Positions 1 through 11,600 of a DNA stretch of 64,000 bases are shown here, one piece after another. The DNA comes from Podarcis pityusensis. Its lineage: Eukaryota. Each line of letters opens with the position of its first letter. Position 1 is the first letter of the stretch. Below the pieces are notes generated by a model, which did no database searches, was not told where the DNA came from, and worked only from the letters and a program-made list of their open reading frames with translations. A program made the position numbers and the translations under genes. The stretch is taken from NCBI GenBank assembly GCA_964106645.2, contig OZ067039.1, one strand, 5' to 3'.

Positions 1-563
1 GCATCTGCGGAGCAAAGCGTTTGCAGCCTCTCTGAATAAACAGAACCTCAGCCGGATGAGTATGTTAAAGTTTGCACATGCATCTCTCCCCCTCTTGCTA
101 GTTTTGCTGGTGAATTATTGTTCTTGCGAGGGACACAGTGTGAGAGGAAACCCTTTGCCCTGTTGTCTGTTTTGGGGCTGGAGTGCCTGCGTTCCTTATT
201 GGCAGCTAGCAAGCCCTGGAGTTGGCGGTGCAGAATGCTTGCTCCAGCCTCCCTTCCTGGGTGCTGCATGCTGCTCTGTTCATTGTGGGGCCCAGCTGTG
301 TACTCAGCAATCTGCTTTCATCTGGCTGGTGCCACCAGTTCAGCCCTCTCCTTGTATGGGGCTTTGAGCCAGAAGCCGCTTAACCCTTGAGTGGCTGCTC
401 CCTTGATGTCACGCCTGCTCAGCAAGCAACGCCTGCTGCTTTGGGTGATGATTCAGTAGTGTTTAGCATCCCAGCTATTTTGCAGTCTAGCTGGCTCCTA
501 GGGGGCAGGAATCAAATTCCCTTTCCTCCTCTCTCTTTGCTCTGTTCTGCCATAGCCCTAAAG

Positions 564-1404
564 CAGGGGTCAGCAAACTTTTTCAGCAGGGAGCTGGTCC
601 ATTGTCCCTCAGACCTTGTGGGGGGGGGCAGACTATATGTTGCCATGATTATGACCCGCATTTTTGGCAAAAACCCTTATTGGGACCAACCCCAATGTTG
701 CCCAAATGTGACTTTTGGGGGGGGGGTCCCTCATACACCCACGCTGCTTCCTTTGTGTTTTATGCGTTGACAGTTATTATTTCTCTCATAAGGTGGGGTG
801 GGGGGCTGAGGTAAGCGTGCCATTCCTGTCAGCCCTGGAGAGTGTTTGCGCATGTGTGGGTGAAGGGAAAAGCCGTTGGCCACGCTTAGTCAGGCCGGCA
901 CCACTCAAGCAAAGACTTTCCTTTCCCCACGTGAGGGAAGACGAGGCGGTGGCTATTTACCTTTCCATGGCTCGCACCGTGTAGCTAACAAGCGGCCTCC
1001 CCAGCAGAGTGCAGAACTGCTTTGGAGTGCAGCCGCCCAGGCACTCCCCGTTTCCTTTGGTGGGGAGCACCGCCGCCAAACCCCTGCCGAGGCGCCTCCA
1101 AACCCCTGCCACTGCAACTGCCCTTCCTGAGGTCAGTCGCCGGCAGCTCCGTGGTGGAATTCCAAACTGTGGCTCCTTTTCCCTCTTCCCCACCCCCACC
1201 CCATAAGAAAATACTGTTGCGTGCGACGGACGGAGAAGGGGCTTGTCTCAAGCAGCCACCCACCTCATTTTTGACCCCCAAGCCTGGCTGAGTCGCAAAA
1301 ACCATTGTGCCCACGTGCTGTGCCAGCTGCCTGGATTCCTGGACCGTCCGCGGGCCAGATCTGGGACCTGATCTGGCCCACAGACCTTAGTTTGCCAACC
1401 CATG
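564..1404. mobile_element. Non-autonomous hAT DNA transposon carrying captured host sequence (Pack-hAT)
   Basis: Imperfect TIRs CAGGGGTCAGCAAACT (564-579) and AGTTTGCCAACCCATG (1389-1404). Perfect 8-bp TSD CCCTAAAG at 556-563 and 1405-1412. Ends match the shorter element at 9262-9496. Confidence 0.9.
961..1152 (-). pseudogene. CRPPA: Captured, decayed exon-1 fragment of CRPPA/ISPD (CDP-ribitol pyrophosphorylase A)
   Basis: Translates [40 protein letters not shown] versus recalled human [40 protein letters not shown]. Ends at a donor AG|GTAAAT (961/960). Likely former start CCACC-ACG-G at 1150-1152. Frameshifted, and no downstream exons in the window. Confidence 0.8.
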
Positions 1405-2714
1405 CCCTAAAGCCTCAGTCCTTGTCCTTTTCTAGCCTTGTATTTTTAAGTCTTTGGCATTTCCACGACTCTGCTGTTTTTAATAGGAGATAGCAAACAG
1501 ATTTGGTCTCTTGTGCAACCCAAAAGCCAGGGTGTCCTAACACATTTCATCAGGCACCGCACTGCTTTTCTACAAACATGACGTCTGAAACAACGCTGTC
1601 GAATTGTTCTGAGCTGTTCGACTGAGCCATTGTCTGCCAGCTGTAACAATAGCCTCGCTTTTCTGTACAGTTCTGCTTTGGGTTTGCTTTCTGTGCTTTA
1701 AAAATAAATAAATTAAAAGCTTGTCTGTCTATGGTAGCTCATTTGACACTATCATGGCAGCATCTTCGTTGTTCCATGCTAATCCCCACCAACACATTTG
1801 GGCTGCATCCAGCCTAATGGATCTCAGTTTCTGCGAGCATAGCAGGGGAAGGACGGGTGGCCCAGCATAGCAGCTTGGCTGCCTTCCAAGGCTGCTTCCT
1901 CCTTGGCTTCTGCTTGGGGCTAGCTGAGGTGACAGAGCTCTCTCAGGCGGCTCAGCTGCTCCAGGGTGCCCTGCCTAGGATCCTTTGCACCTGTCCGTCA
2001 GGGTAAGGCAACTGCTGTGATCTGTGGGCAGACGCGGCCCTTGAAGTCATTCTGCTGCAGAAGGAATGAAATTAACGCAGTTGTTGGTCCAGTCCGGTGT
2101 GATTTTGATTAGCTGCTGATACAGTTCAACAGTTGGGAGTATGAACTTGGACCTGTGAAGCATCTGCTGGAATCCAAGTTTATTCAAGGCCACACTCTGG
2201 CATTGAGTCGTCATTCCCTTTGCCATGAGTCTGTCAGGAGTGTTGAATGACAGTGATGAAGATGGGGGGTGGACAGGAAGTTTAGAAGCATAATAAAGTA
2301 ATTTGCACACGAATGATAAATAGCAACGGCGATAGTGTAGACCACCTTTTCCCAATCTGGTGCCCTCTTGAGGTTTTGGACTACAACTCCCATCATTCCT
2401 AGCCAAGATGGCCTGTGGTCAGAATAATGGGAATTGTAGTTGGCAACAGCTAGAGAGTACCAGGTTGGAAAATGCTGGTGTAGACATTGAGTTTTCAGCA
2501 TGTTTCCCCTCCCCCTTGGGACTGAGGTGGTTTGATGGTGGATTTTGGCATATGTAACTATCACCTCAGCTTCATACATAGCTATCATTTCTGGTCCTAT
2601 ATAGATTGCTTGTAAGCGTGCATCAGGTCCAGCTTTCCTCTGTCCTGTATTTCTGTCTGAAAATCTGGACTCCCCAGTTGGTTACCCAATGCCTTCCCCA
2701 ATTTAAGACTAAAC

Positions 2715-5688: not shown

Positions 5689-8600
5689 GTGAGGGTGGGC
5701 AGAAGTTAGTGACAGAAACCCTGGCCTCCTGTGTATTGAGCAAAACTTTAGATTTTGTAAACACTACTTTCAAACCTCAGGAAGCTCCACATAACATAGT
5801 GGTTTTTCTTCCTGGAATGTTTTTTTCACCCTTCAGATTTTAGAGGGATGTGTGCATGTGTGTGATAATTTTTGGGGTGCAGGGTGGGGAGTCATTGAGA
5901 AGGAAGACTTGCTGCTCTACAAAAAAGATTGGGGACAGGAGAATACGTGAGCTTTTTAGCAAAACTTCCACCACATGTTCAGGTTTGTTAGAATCTCCTC
6001 CAGGTCATAAGACAGGGAAAGGTGACAAAATTTGGTTATTTTGGGTTGCAAATTACATTAGCAGATAACATCTGCAGACTAATTCACAAGCTTGCAAAAG
6101 AAAAGAAAAGAAAAGAAAAGAACCACCTCACACAACAAACTGGTATGTGGAGTGTCTTGGAATCAAAATAAAGAGTTTTAGGGTGCTGTAATGGATGTGA
6201 TATACCCCACCACGTGACCACATAATAGGCACTCTTCCAGAGACATCGCTTTGTAAGCATTGTATGAAATTTTTTCCACCGAGTCGGTACTCAGAGTGGT
6301 TTTCAACAAAGCAATTTAAAGCATGGATGGTTTAAAAAAATGGTTGTGGGTGTGGGTGGTGGTGTTGTTTTTTGCTGTTACTAAAACTTCATTAATTACA
6401 GTATAATTCCATTTGAGCTGATACAGTTAAATGTCACATCAGCTGCCAGGACAATTCATAACTCAAGACTGGTCAAAAGCCTGTTGAGCAAGCGTCTCGA
6501 ACAAAAAACCTGTTGAAATGCTACGATAAAGAATCCACTGGCATTTCTGCCAGCACTGTTCAGACTTTCAACCCTTGCTCCCCTTTCTTTAGGGGTACAA
6601 GATCTGCAGGCTGTGGGTCTGGATGTTCCAATCTTTGACGCTTTCCTCCCCTGCTCCCATTTTTTCTGTTTTTCCACAGGAGGTGAAGCAGTGGATGAGC
6701 AGGCGCAGCAAGAGGAGGTGGAAGATAAACTGAAGGAGTGCATTGACAATGTGATGGACAAGAGGTGAGGCTCATCGGCTGTTTTTAAGCTAAATTCAAA
6801 TGTTGTGCCAAACCGTGGCTCTGGAAGCTTATTCCATGCCCCCTGAGGATGCTCAGACCTCCCTGGATTGTTGTTTTTTCCTCAGCCCTTAAAGTTTTCC
6901 CTCCCAAAAGTTACTTTTAATTCTGGAAAGTAGTTTTGATTCCTCCAAGCCTGCTCTTATGTACAGAAACATAACACTCATCATTTGGGCTGCCTAAGAG
7001 GAGGCGGTCAGAGAACTGTGTTCCCTGTTAGCATATAGACTGCTTCCATGGCAAGCTGCCAACCGGGATAGGCTGGGTGCAGCTCCATTGAGAAGAACTT
7101 GGCAGAAGTGCACACAGCGCTTGGCACTTCTCCTCACTACAACAGTATGAATTACTGCTGCCCTTCTGGCCCTGCAGCCTCGATTATTCAGAGTGAACTT
7201 CTGAACTGGGGTGATGGTCTGCACAGTCCGTAGAACATCATTGACTTAGCGTGCGTTCTGATCTCCGTCACACCATGGAATTATTAGGAGGTGCACACTG
7301 GGATATATCATGTATACTTCTGGTGTATTTCCTGATAAACCAAAGCGGTTGGTTCTGAGCCTCAGAATACACACTGCCCTCCCCGAGTCACTTGTGCAGT
7401 TCAGAGCGCGTGCCGTGTACCCGTTATCTTCACACTGAATCAGTATGGGTTTTGTAGCAGGTGAAGAATTTGCTGAACTGTTCAGAAAGATGAAGTAAAC
7501 CTGCAAAATTCGTTCAGAGCGAGCTGACTTTATTTGGCACTGGACTTGGATTCTTGTGAGGAGGGCTGCGCATTCTTGGCTCTTGTTATGACTCCCATCT
7601 CTCTCTTTTTGACATCTTTCCAGTGCCAAGACACGGCAGGTTGCTCTAGAGAGCCTGCGACTGGCCTTCTCCTCCAAGACGCTCTTTGACTTCCTGTTGG
7701 AACGCAGGCTCACTGTCACAGACTCCTTAGAGAAGTGCCTGAAGAAAGGTGGGTCTCTGCAACCTTTAGTACAGCACCATTATGTAATACAGACGGACTT
7801 GATCCAGCTTAACCAAAGCACTTCCAAGTCCCATTTGGTTTTAGCAGGAGAAATGAGCACCTGCTTTAATTAAATCTCTCCCACCGAAAACAACTGGGCA
7901 TGAAAATGGTTTGTGTTGGCAGTTTCATACTTTTCTAAATAAGGTAACTTCTGGTTGTTTTTATTGTCCTTTTGTAATTTGATACTTCTGTTAAGCATAA
8001 AGATTGTGAAGTTACCATATTTGATGCATAATAATAATAATAATAATTTATTATTTATACCCCTCCCATCTGGCTGGACTTCCCCAGCCACTCTGGGCAG
8101 CTAATGTAAACATTTCCACATAAGTTTTCATCCATTGTTAACAACCACCTTATAAGATAGGCTAGTGTGATTATCCCCTTGTTACTAGTACGAGCAGAGG
8201 GCGACTGCAACTCGCCCCAGGTTTACTGTGAATTTTGAACCAAGGCCTCCTGGCTCTCTCACAAAATGAGGCATGTTAGTGCTGCCGTTCTCCCATCTGT
8301 GAAGGATTGGTAGGTTTCTGTGACATCTCCATTGTTATATGGCAAAGGGATAGAACTTTACTTCTCTATGTTCATTTTAACAACTTGCGTGCTTCTTGCC
8401 TGCCCTCTTGATGTTGCCTTTGAAATGCCCTGTGCATCAGAGATGGTGAGTCTTTGCAACCCTCCCAGATATTGGGCTACAACTCCCATCAGCCTCAGCT
8501 AGCATGGCCGATGGTCAGGGATGATGAGAGTTGTAGTCAGACAACATCTGGAGGGCCGCAGCATCTTTGTCCCAGTTCTACATCCTGTAGGCAACCTTTT

Positions 8601-11600
8601 GCCTTTAAAACCGCTTTGGAATATTGTGAGACAGTACTGCGCCAGGGCAGAAAAGATGCCGCTTCTGGTGCTCTGTGCCCCCGCAATTCTAAGTTTCATA
8701 ACTGTCCCGTGTTCCCTGTTTTCTTGCACATGACTAGTGCTGTTTTGAATATTTTGCATGAGAGGGAAAGGCAGCTTATTCTCTTCCTCCTCTCAGGTAA
8801 AGGGGAGGAGCAGTCCCTTGCTGCTACTGTCCTTACACTACTGTGCCTTCAGATGGGCTCGGGGCCCGAGGGGGAGGAGGTGTTCCGCAGCCTGAAGCCC
8901 CTCCTCACCACCATCCTCACAGACTCCTCGGCCAGCCCAGTTGCTCGGCAAAGTGTGAGTAGCACCTCTTTTTTTCTGTCTCAGAGGAAACCTTGTGGGA
9001 GGGAGATGTTACTGGGCACTCTGGGAAATGGTTTCTTAAAATGGCTACTTGGAATGGCTTTGACGTTGCCTTGTCCTGTCTTCCTTTTTCTCTTCCGTCT
9101 CCCCCGGTAGTGTGCCACTGCTCTTGGGATGTGCTGCTACATCGCTGCTGCAGACATGGAGGTAACTTACCCTAATGCTTTAACTTGACAGGCGGTAGCC
9201 AGTGAAGCAAGAACCTAGATCTCCCTCCCCTCCTGTATGGGGTGGTGTAGTAGTAACAAGGCAGGGGTCAGCAAACTTTTTCAGCAGGGGGCCGGTCCAC
9301 TGTCCCTCAGATCTTGTGGGGGGCCGGACTATATTTTTTTTTGGGGGGGGGGATGAACGAATTCCTATGTCCCACAAATAACCCAGAGATGCATTTTAAA
9401 TAAAAGGACACATTCTACTCATGTAAAAACACGCTGATTCCCGGACCGTCCACGGGCCGGATTTAGGCGATTGGGGCCTTATTTTGTCTACTCATGACTA
9501 GAGTGTCAGCACCCTGTCTTTGAATACTGATCCTTGGAGTTTGTCAGGTCTAGATTAGTTGTAAGAGTGCCCGACTCCACCATGCTCTCAAATTGTTTCA
9601 GAGAGTATTTGTTACTTTCTGAAAAGTGGTTAGCCAAGTATTGATCCCCTGAAGTGTTTTAGGGAAGCCATTCATTTTGCATTGAGAAACAGCCCCTTGA
9701 CTACTGATTCCTTGCATAACTCAGTCTATTGAGACTCCTCCGTAGTCCCTTCTGATTAAATAGCTCCTGGTTTTTCCACCCACAGTTTTTATCCCATGCT
9801 GCTTCTCTGGTATACCGCTTAGCTATTGCTTTTGTAGCTACACAGAGGACTGACCACCTCACTACAGGTAGAGCCAATTCCTTTTGGATCAGCCCAGAGA
9901 GGTGGGACTAAGATGAGCTGCTCTCTGCATTAGGACATGGCCATAGCTGGACTTACCTATTCAAGTTGAAACTGGTGGTTTTAAGGCTTCATTCACGAAA
10001 ATGGACTCATTCTTCATGCGCAGGAATACTTAACAGATTTACAAGGGGAAAGCACATACTGTAAGTGTTTTGGGGTGTGCGTTTCATTTCTAGAACAAAA
10101 GAGAACAAGAAAAAGCACTTTGGGTGTCATTGAACTTTAGGGCTGCAGTCTACCCAACTTTCCTGCATTGGCAAACCTGGCTCCCTCAGAGTTGATTGCC
10201 AGCGTAATGTGAACCCAGATTATGTGCCACCCTGAAGCCCCAGCGTAGTTCACCCAGAAACTTAGATACTCTTCTGGTTTATTGTATCCTTTTTTAGTTT
10301 CTCTTATTGTTTCTGTGAGAACTGACTGATCACTTCCCACCCCCTTCAGGACTTGGTTTCCTGTCTTGCCTGCCTAGAAGGCATCTTTGGCAGTTCCTGC
10401 AGCACGGATGCCAGCTTGGTGCCCTCTCATCACAGTCCTCTGCTCCAGACCTTGCATTGCAATGCACTCCAGTCATGGTCTCTGCTCCTCACCATCTGCC
10501 CAAGCACCCAGATCAAGAAGATCCTGGACAAGTGAGTGTTGAGCTTGATGATCAGACTGGGGAAGGGGCTTTCCATGGGCGTCTGGTTGACCACTGTGAG
10601 ACCAGGATGCTGGACTAGATGCGCCACTTGCCTGATCGAGCAGGGCTGTTCTTACATTCTTGCCTTGTGCTCTCCTTCTACAGTCACTTACCCAAGTTGC
10701 CGCTGATGCTGTCCAGTGATAACGTCAACCTTCGGATTGTGGCAGGTGAAACGATTGCACTGCTCTTTGAACTGGCTCGAGACATGGAGGTAGGATATAG
10801 CACTTGCTGATACTTGCATACTCACATGCGAGGTCCCTCTTGTGCTTGTGACCATTCTCTATTGGAGGCAATATTGCACTGAACGCCAGCTTCTAGGGAG
10901 CAGAAACGTCTGCTGCCTTCGTATCACAGAGCCTTGTGATTGCCCATTGTGAGAAACAGGTTGCCCAACTAGATAGGCCTTTGGTCTGGTCCAGCAAGGC
11001 TCATCGTGGGTTCTTGTAGCCCCTGAGGCCTTTGCCAATAAGCTGGGGGGGGGGGGACTTAAGAAGATCCCTTCTGGATCAGGTCAATGGCCCATCTACT
11101 CCAGCCTCCTGTTCCCACAGTAGCCAACCAGATGCATATGGGAAGCCTGCAAGCTGGTTGGAAGACCCAGTGAAGAAAATAATAGTCTTGACAGCAATTC
11201 CAAATCTATCAACTTCCAAGTTTCATTCCCTGTCTGCACACGAACACACACACTCTTAGTGTCTTAGGATATGATCATTTGAGGCAAACCCTGCAGTGCC
11301 CTTTGGCTTTGTGTTGATAAAAGACTGCCTTAGAAAATTTAATCTTGAGTAAAATGCTGTCCCACTCAAAATTTGTGAGTCTATATGAGGAAAGGGTGGA
11401 TCGGTCTATTTTTTTGTCTTTGTCCATTTTGCACATATTCATGAGTTTAGTATGGTTTCTGCAGCCACCTTTTTATTGCAAAACACTCCTTTTATCCTAA
11501 AATATACATTTTCTAAATGTACGTCAGCACATTGTTGCTGTTTTTTTGAACTGAGCGTTGAATTGCAAAATTCATAAGTGTGAAATCCAAACAGTAAACT

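Follow-up and report, generated by a model that had tools for sequence, protein, structure and literature searches.

A unit of 841 bp at positions 564–1404 was characterized in a 64,000-nucleotide stretch of DNA from Podarcis pityusensis (hereafter, the window). With a probability of roughly 0.82, the unit was one fixed and decayed copy of an amplified non-autonomous hAT family ("Pack-hAT") carrying the 5′ end of the gene CRPPA. The CRPPA cargo was not a capture peculiar to this locus; contigs from related lizards supported it as a feature of a whole family, present with tens of copies in each of at least four species. In the proposed mechanism, approximately 100 bp of the interior of an abundant hAT miniature inverted-repeat transposable element (MITE) would have been replaced with a 691-bp DNA copy of the CRPPA 5′ end. 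The loading would have been a single capture through gap repair or replication template switching at microhomologies of 1–4 nt, and may date back tens of millions of years in the lacertid lineage. A hAT transposase would subsequently have mobilized the loaded element in trans, amplification would have produced tens of copies, and the decay of all copies, including that in the window, would have left them inert.

The inverted ends and the perfect 8-bp target-site duplication (TSD) were read directly from the window, as described in the initial annotation. The probability that all 8 letters of the TSD would match at fixed positions by chance was approximately 1.5e-5. The terminal inverted repeat (TIR), which began with CAGGGG on the left and CATGGG on the right, was paired at 13 of 16 positions (CAGGGGTCAGCAAACT against the reverse complement CATGGGTTGGCAAACT), and was given as 17 nt at 82% in the inverted-repeat listing (pair I3). 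A short TIR beginning with CAG or YARNG is typical of hAT elements. Moreover, both ends matched a 235-bp element at 9262–9496, which was also in agreement with the initial annotation. A 28-nt motif of the left end occurred at only two places in the window, namely, in the unit and in this short element, with a chance expectation of 0. The right end (about 70 bp, approximately 1333–1404) was aligned with 9441–9496 of the short element with a 10-nt indel. No transposase open reading frame (ORF) was found within 564–1404. The features of the transposon are given below.

556–563, no strand: left copy of the TSD CCCTAAAG, read directly, with the same letters as 1405–1412 and abutting the unit.
564–637, plus strand: left end of the non-autonomous hAT-type element, with the TIR at 564–579 and 89% identity to 9262–9333.
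1336–1404, plus strand: right end of the hAT-type element, matching 9438–9496, with a subterminal hairpin at 1346–1385 and the TIR at 1389–1404 (inverted repeats I2 and I3).
1405–1412, no strand: right copy of the TSD CCCTAAAG, read directly and abutting the unit.
9262–9496, plus strand: unloaded 235-bp relative with the same backbone (MITE), the ends of which match those of 564–1404; no intact TSD was seen.

The interior of the unit was compared with the CRPPA gene of Podarcis raffonei (L001, 56 kb). The BLASTN search of window positions 300–1700 against L001 gave a single match, in which 1335 to 638 of the window was colinear with L001:2975–3665 (587 of 729 columns; 89.4% identity outside gaps). 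The colinear match to a real CRPPA locus anticipated in the initial annotation was thus obtained, and the homology ended at the boundaries of the transposon ends. The replacement of the middle of the element by unrelated DNA was also borne out, whereas its size was not about 650 bp but 698 bp (638–1335); the parental counterpart was 691 bp. Relative to the gene, the cargo started 188 bp before the conserved ATG (L001:3163), ran through the whole of exon 1 and its GTAAAT donor, and ended 297 bp into intron 1. The CRPPA homology and the MITE homology abutted at 637/638 and 1335/1336, with microhomology of 1–4 nt at each of the two junctions. Beyond 638 and 1335, the real CRPPA locus continued with unrelated sequence, and no transposon-end sequence was found in the 56 kb of L001. 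The parts of the cargo are given below.

638–960, minus strand: first ~297 bp of CRPPA intron 1, colinear with L001:3369–3665 at 89.5% identity outside gaps.
961–1152, minus strand: coding sequence of CRPPA exon 1, with 91.1% identity to L001:3163–3368 and a match to human ISPD at E 8e-10.
1153–1335, minus strand: the 188 bp that precede the CRPPA start codon (5′ untranslated region (UTR) or promoter-proximal, CpG-rich), matching L001:2975–3162 at 87.5%.

The minus-strand peptide of the cargo was as quoted in the initial annotation and was followed by the donor AG/GTAAAT at 962–955 (GTAAAT at 960–955). Its assignment to the N-terminal motif of CRPPA/ISPD was confirmed by a match to residues 6–46 of human ISPD/CRPPA (4cvh_A; phmmer against the PDB, E 8e-10) and by a match to Pfam IspD (PF01128) at E 6e-5, which was under the gathering score since the peptide had just 40 residues. 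The library-wide phmmer search with the same peptide gave vertebrate CRPPA N-termini, and lacertid CRPPA proteins were found by further search in P. raffonei (P0103) and P. muralis (P0104). The real exon 1 of P. raffonei (L001:3001–3368, tblastn) ended with the same AMER and AG/GTAAAT as the cargo, in accordance with the claim that the first exon ends at this codon, and exon 2 was located 6.5 kb further on. The intron-derived cargo had approximately 31 extra bases near 900–930 relative to Podarcis. The NCBI model of P. raffonei CRPPA begins 54 codons upstream (L001:3001–3162) of the ATG used by other squamate CRPPA proteins (ME[LP]PATD...); this extension is probably 5′ UTR read as coding sequence.

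Because intron and upstream DNA were retained, a retroposition origin was ruled out, and the cargo is a DNA-level capture of the CRPPA 5′ end, as had been argued initially. Both of the partners by which a Pack-TIR is recognized were identified, namely, the backbone (9262–9496) and a parent that is not a transposable element (CRPPA, seen in P. raffonei). Other interpretations of the interior were rejected. A weak resemblance to the interior of the short element had suggested that the cargo started near 756 and that 564–755 was MITE-derived; the CRPPA homology was unbroken to 638. An inner inverted repeat (781–804/1188–1211) resembled a second transposon and consisted of G-rich and C-rich tracts that were present in the real CRPPA locus too. 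The protein homologue search with the 80-aa ORF at 960–1199 (minus strand) gave no match, which was uninformative given its length limits and a set without lizard ORF calls. The nine contigs returned by a metagenome scan with an 18-nt junction word matched over only 18–21 nt and were attributed to chance.

The state of the window copy was evaluated against the real P. raffonei gene. The start codon, in a Kozak-like context, was changed from ATG to ACG (1152–1150), and a 14-nt deletion near 1080 shifted the frame of exon 1. In the Gly-x-Gly-x-Arg signature, CGC (Arg) was replaced by TGC (Cys) at 1043–1041, and hence the catalytic Arg was lost. Changes from CpG to TpG or CpA accounted for 25 of the 70 substitutions in the direction from gene to cargo and for 5 in the reverse direction, and the CpG count was 29 in the cargo versus 55 in the real gene. 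This pattern is expected for a methylated and unconstrained copy of a CpG-island gene start. Furthermore, the similar identities of the three parts of the cargo (87.5%, 91.1%, and 89.5%) would fit neutral decay. The cargo resembles CRPPA/ISPD (D-ribitol-5-phosphate cytidylyltransferase; IspD family PF01128) in having exon 1 with the N-terminal nucleotide-binding signature, but it has exon 1 only, which is frameshifted, without a start codon, and with the signature Arg replaced. Judged from these features, the window copy is dead and holds no functional CRPPA/IspD gene. An apparent 22-nt tandem repeat was also noted at 1071–1110 (repeat family D3). A duplication was discarded as its explanation: compared with the genuine exon of Podarcis CRPPA, the same segment had a 14-nt deletion and substitutions, and other copies carried extra bases at 1078–1085.

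The abundance of the cargo was explored with Logan contigs from four runs (X1, X3, X8, and X16) of four related species, which were aligned to window positions 1–2400 at a likeness of at least 80%; no RNA run was found to contain the stretch. The flanks at 1–480 and 1441–2320 had single-copy depth (21–27 in X1), whereas the interior bins at 641–1360 had depths of 594–1886 in X1, and the ratio was alike in X3, X8, and X16. The summed contig depth is a rough proxy and no true copy number, and on this basis the cargo corresponded to about 50–70 copy equivalents per species. The depth dropped to single copy just outside both inverted ends, showing that the repeated unit was bounded by them. The distinct contigs that differed from the window numbered 17–36 per variable site per species, and the sibling contigs listed were 12–15% different from the window copy. 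At position 1151, 19–24 contigs per species carried the base that restores the ATG, indicating that the loss of the start codon was private to the window copy. The changes at 1102, 1151, 1160, and 1268 of this copy likewise differed from nearly all other copies. The contig X3 record 23, which belongs to another copy, spanned the cargo/right-end junction. The other sibling contigs were 180–320 nt in length, mostly fell short of the ends, and broke at approximately 1343–1362, where the high-copy MITE ends start; such breaks are expected if the siblings run on into the same ends.

The depth of the two ends differed by about 150-fold (approximately 45,000x single copy on the left versus 290x on the right; contig depth, four species). 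The left end at 564–637 was that of a very abundant MITE. This difference implies either a rare variant at the right end, given its 10-nt indel and the hairpin at 1346–1385 in comparison with 9262–9496, or a left end common to much larger families.

A copy of the cargo was also identified in another lacertid genus. The Zootoca vivipara protein XP_034992723.1 (P0005) is an 819-aa model of the calcium-sensing-receptor-like (calcium-sensing/vomeronasal) type, in which a stretch of approximately 85 residues (about 440–522) between receptor domains matched the translation of the cargo. The stretch included part of the sequence upstream of the ATG and ended at the same donor as the cargo. A copy thus sits in a different gene and was taken into the annotation as an exon, which may be either a genuine exonization or an annotation artefact.

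The multi-copy evidence and the Zootoca locus bear on whether the loaded element moved. The initial annotation had taken the intact TSD as a sign that the element may have transposed as a unit; the movement was upheld, but not on the ground of the TSD, which loading of a MITE in situ would also leave intact. The movement as a unit is instead supported by the many copies and by the Zootoca copy at another locus. A capture in place, in which a resident MITE was broken and repaired from a CRPPA template and the loaded element never moved, is unlikely. The TSD is equally compatible with such an event, both junctions have short microhomologies, and most animal Pack-TIRs are single-copy and were so formed (PMC8277862). 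However, it does not explain a depth of about 50–70 times single copy, spread over dozens of contigs in each of the four species, for a unit bounded by inverted ends, nor the copy in a different gene in Zootoca, nor the same cargo/right-end junction in X3 record 23. Capture in place is possible for the founder only, and nothing marks the window copy, with its four private changes, as the founder. Multiplication by segmental or tandem duplication, or as a passenger of some larger and unrelated repeat, with the hAT ends incidental, was considered slightly less probable still. Its appeal lies in the shortness of the sibling contigs, the majority of which stop before the ends; it conflicts with the single-copy depth directly outside both inverted ends, with the stop of the sibling contigs where the high-copy MITE ends begin, with the end of the CRPPA homology at the MITE junctions, and with the perfect TSD.

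The window contains an IFRD2-type gene (IFRD, 8454–9110), two hyaluronidase (HYAL) genes, and a GNAT acetyltransferase gene of the NAA80 type. The IFRD2–HYAL–NAA80 order is that of the human cluster at 3p21.3, and human CRPPA is located at 7p21. No CRPPA exon other than exon 1 was found in the 64-kb window by tblastn, and the statement that CRPPA lies outside the HYAL cluster was in keeping with these results. The reading of the cargo as the lizard's genuine CRPPA exon 1, lying between two independent MITE fragments, was by far the least probable of the alternatives. Only 960 bp of the window lie downstream of the exon, and intron 1 of Podarcis spans 6.5 kb, so that the missing later exons are no argument against it. 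The real exon should nevertheless not have a lost start codon, a 14-nt frameshift, and a replaced catalytic Arg when nearly all other copies keep the ATG. In addition, the homology breaks off sharply at either MITE end, beyond which the real locus has unrelated sequence; the whole unit lies between the two copies of the 8-bp TSD; and the neighbours are IFRD2, HYAL, and NAA80.

The age of the window insertion and of the Pack-hAT family was examined in the same contigs. One contig (X8 record 31) was gapless over 1281–2002, and species C thus has the window insertion together with its cargo. In each of the four species, contigs of the flank reached 15–23 nt into the inverted repeat on the left; in species A and B, they also reached 29 nt into that on the right. 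The bridging rule was 31 nt; these shorter reaches were consistent with, and no proof of, the presence of the insertion in species A, B, and F. The insertion at 564–1404 was therefore present in at least one other species (C) and is probably common to all four. An empty-site allele, with a joint skipping 564–1404, was absent among the joints listed for the four species. The flanks diverged by 0.4–3.6% between species versus 12–15% between cargo copies, and the amplification therefore predates the four species.

Several points weigh against the interpretation as a Pack-hAT family. Contig depth is only a rough measure of copy number. The further copies expected from the initial annotation were found in number and at another locus, and one sibling contig crossed the right junction; no second copy was readable end to end, and no sibling TSD was read. 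Of the two fixed letters of the hAT consensus nTnnnnAn, the TSD at this single site (CCCTAAAG) has the A at position 7, but it has C instead of T at position 2. An autonomous hAT partner was not identified, with the host genome outside the search scope, and the left and right ends differ about 150-fold in abundance. The Zootoca exon belongs to a computed gene model. The promoter-proximal/exon/donor cassette could in principle start chimeric transcripts or give exons to them, which one Zootoca gene model suggests, and any activity of this kind is speculation.

Gene-carrying elements of this kind have been described in animals. In the one systematic survey of animals, which covered 100 genomes, 370 Pack-TIRs were reported, of which 208 were on hAT, the commonest carrier (Tan et al., 2021, Nat Commun 12:4280, PMC8277862). 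Only 4 of the 370 were multicopy and most were single-copy and transposition-independent; the multicopy case that was detailed, the frog hAT-N8_XT, carries a CAPSL 5′ UTR fragment in three copies, and gap repair and replication template switching were discussed as models of capture (PMC8277862). The CRPPA unit is likewise a TIR transposon with a DNA-level interior from a host gene that is not a transposable element, with an identifiable backbone and parent. It differs in that its family numbers, at a rough estimate, tens of copies in the genome of each of four species, in that its cargo is a full cassette of promoter-proximal sequence, first exon, donor, and intron start, and in that the family is old (copies 12–15% apart). 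The CRPPA family is of the known Pack-hAT kind, but it appears far more amplified than the reported animal cases.

The Pack-MULEs of rice and maize are likewise non-autonomous elements with TIRs; they harbour fragments of genes, including introns, and have amplified. Unlike the CRPPA unit, with one capture in a hAT backbone, they belong to the Mutator superfamily and have a 9–10-bp TSD, long TIRs, and thousands of captures. Pack-MULEs favour the GC-rich 5′ ends of genes. In vertebrates, the promoter/first-exon case of bat Helitrons is NUBPL. Bat Helitrons resemble the CRPPA unit as vertebrate DNA transposons that picked up and amplified the promoter and donor-bearing 5′ exon of a host gene, with a potential for chimeric transcripts; by contrast, they are rolling-circle elements without TIRs or a TSD, capture by read-through at the element end, and reach thousands of copies (Thomas et al., 2014, PMC4224331).

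Among gene-carrying DNA transposons of animals, a family with tens of copies in several related species is unusual. In plants, the capture of gene fragments by cut-and-paste elements is one of the main ways in which new gene structures arise. The CRPPA family offers a concrete vertebrate system for how such elements load, whether they prefer CpG-island gene starts, and whether they seed chimeric transcripts or new exons. It is also an annotation hazard: a copy may pass for a CRPPA exon or end up in a gene model, which apparently occurred in Zootoca. A broader reading would be that one abundant lacertid hAT MITE backbone repeatedly captured CpG-island gene starts (CRPPA here), each amplified to tens or hundreds of copies and exonizable by host genes. 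This reading is tentative, and we consider it somewhat more doubtful than probable. If true, recurrent capture by one hAT backbone would be an animal counterpart of the rice Pack-MULEs that scatter promoter/first-exon/donor cassettes.

Two further observations concern other MITEs in the window. The short element at 9262–9496 was located directly 3′ of the IFRD-like exon ORF (8454–9110), and its flanks (TAACAAGG versus ACTAGAGT) had no recognizable TSD, which suggests an older insertion than that of the loaded unit. A separate palindromic MITE of 135 bp was located at 2343–2477, with a perfect 8-bp TSD GTGTAGAC at 2335–2342 and 2478–2485. Its depth was approximately 2,000x single copy in all four species (bin 2321–2400), and its family differs from the CRPPA carrier.
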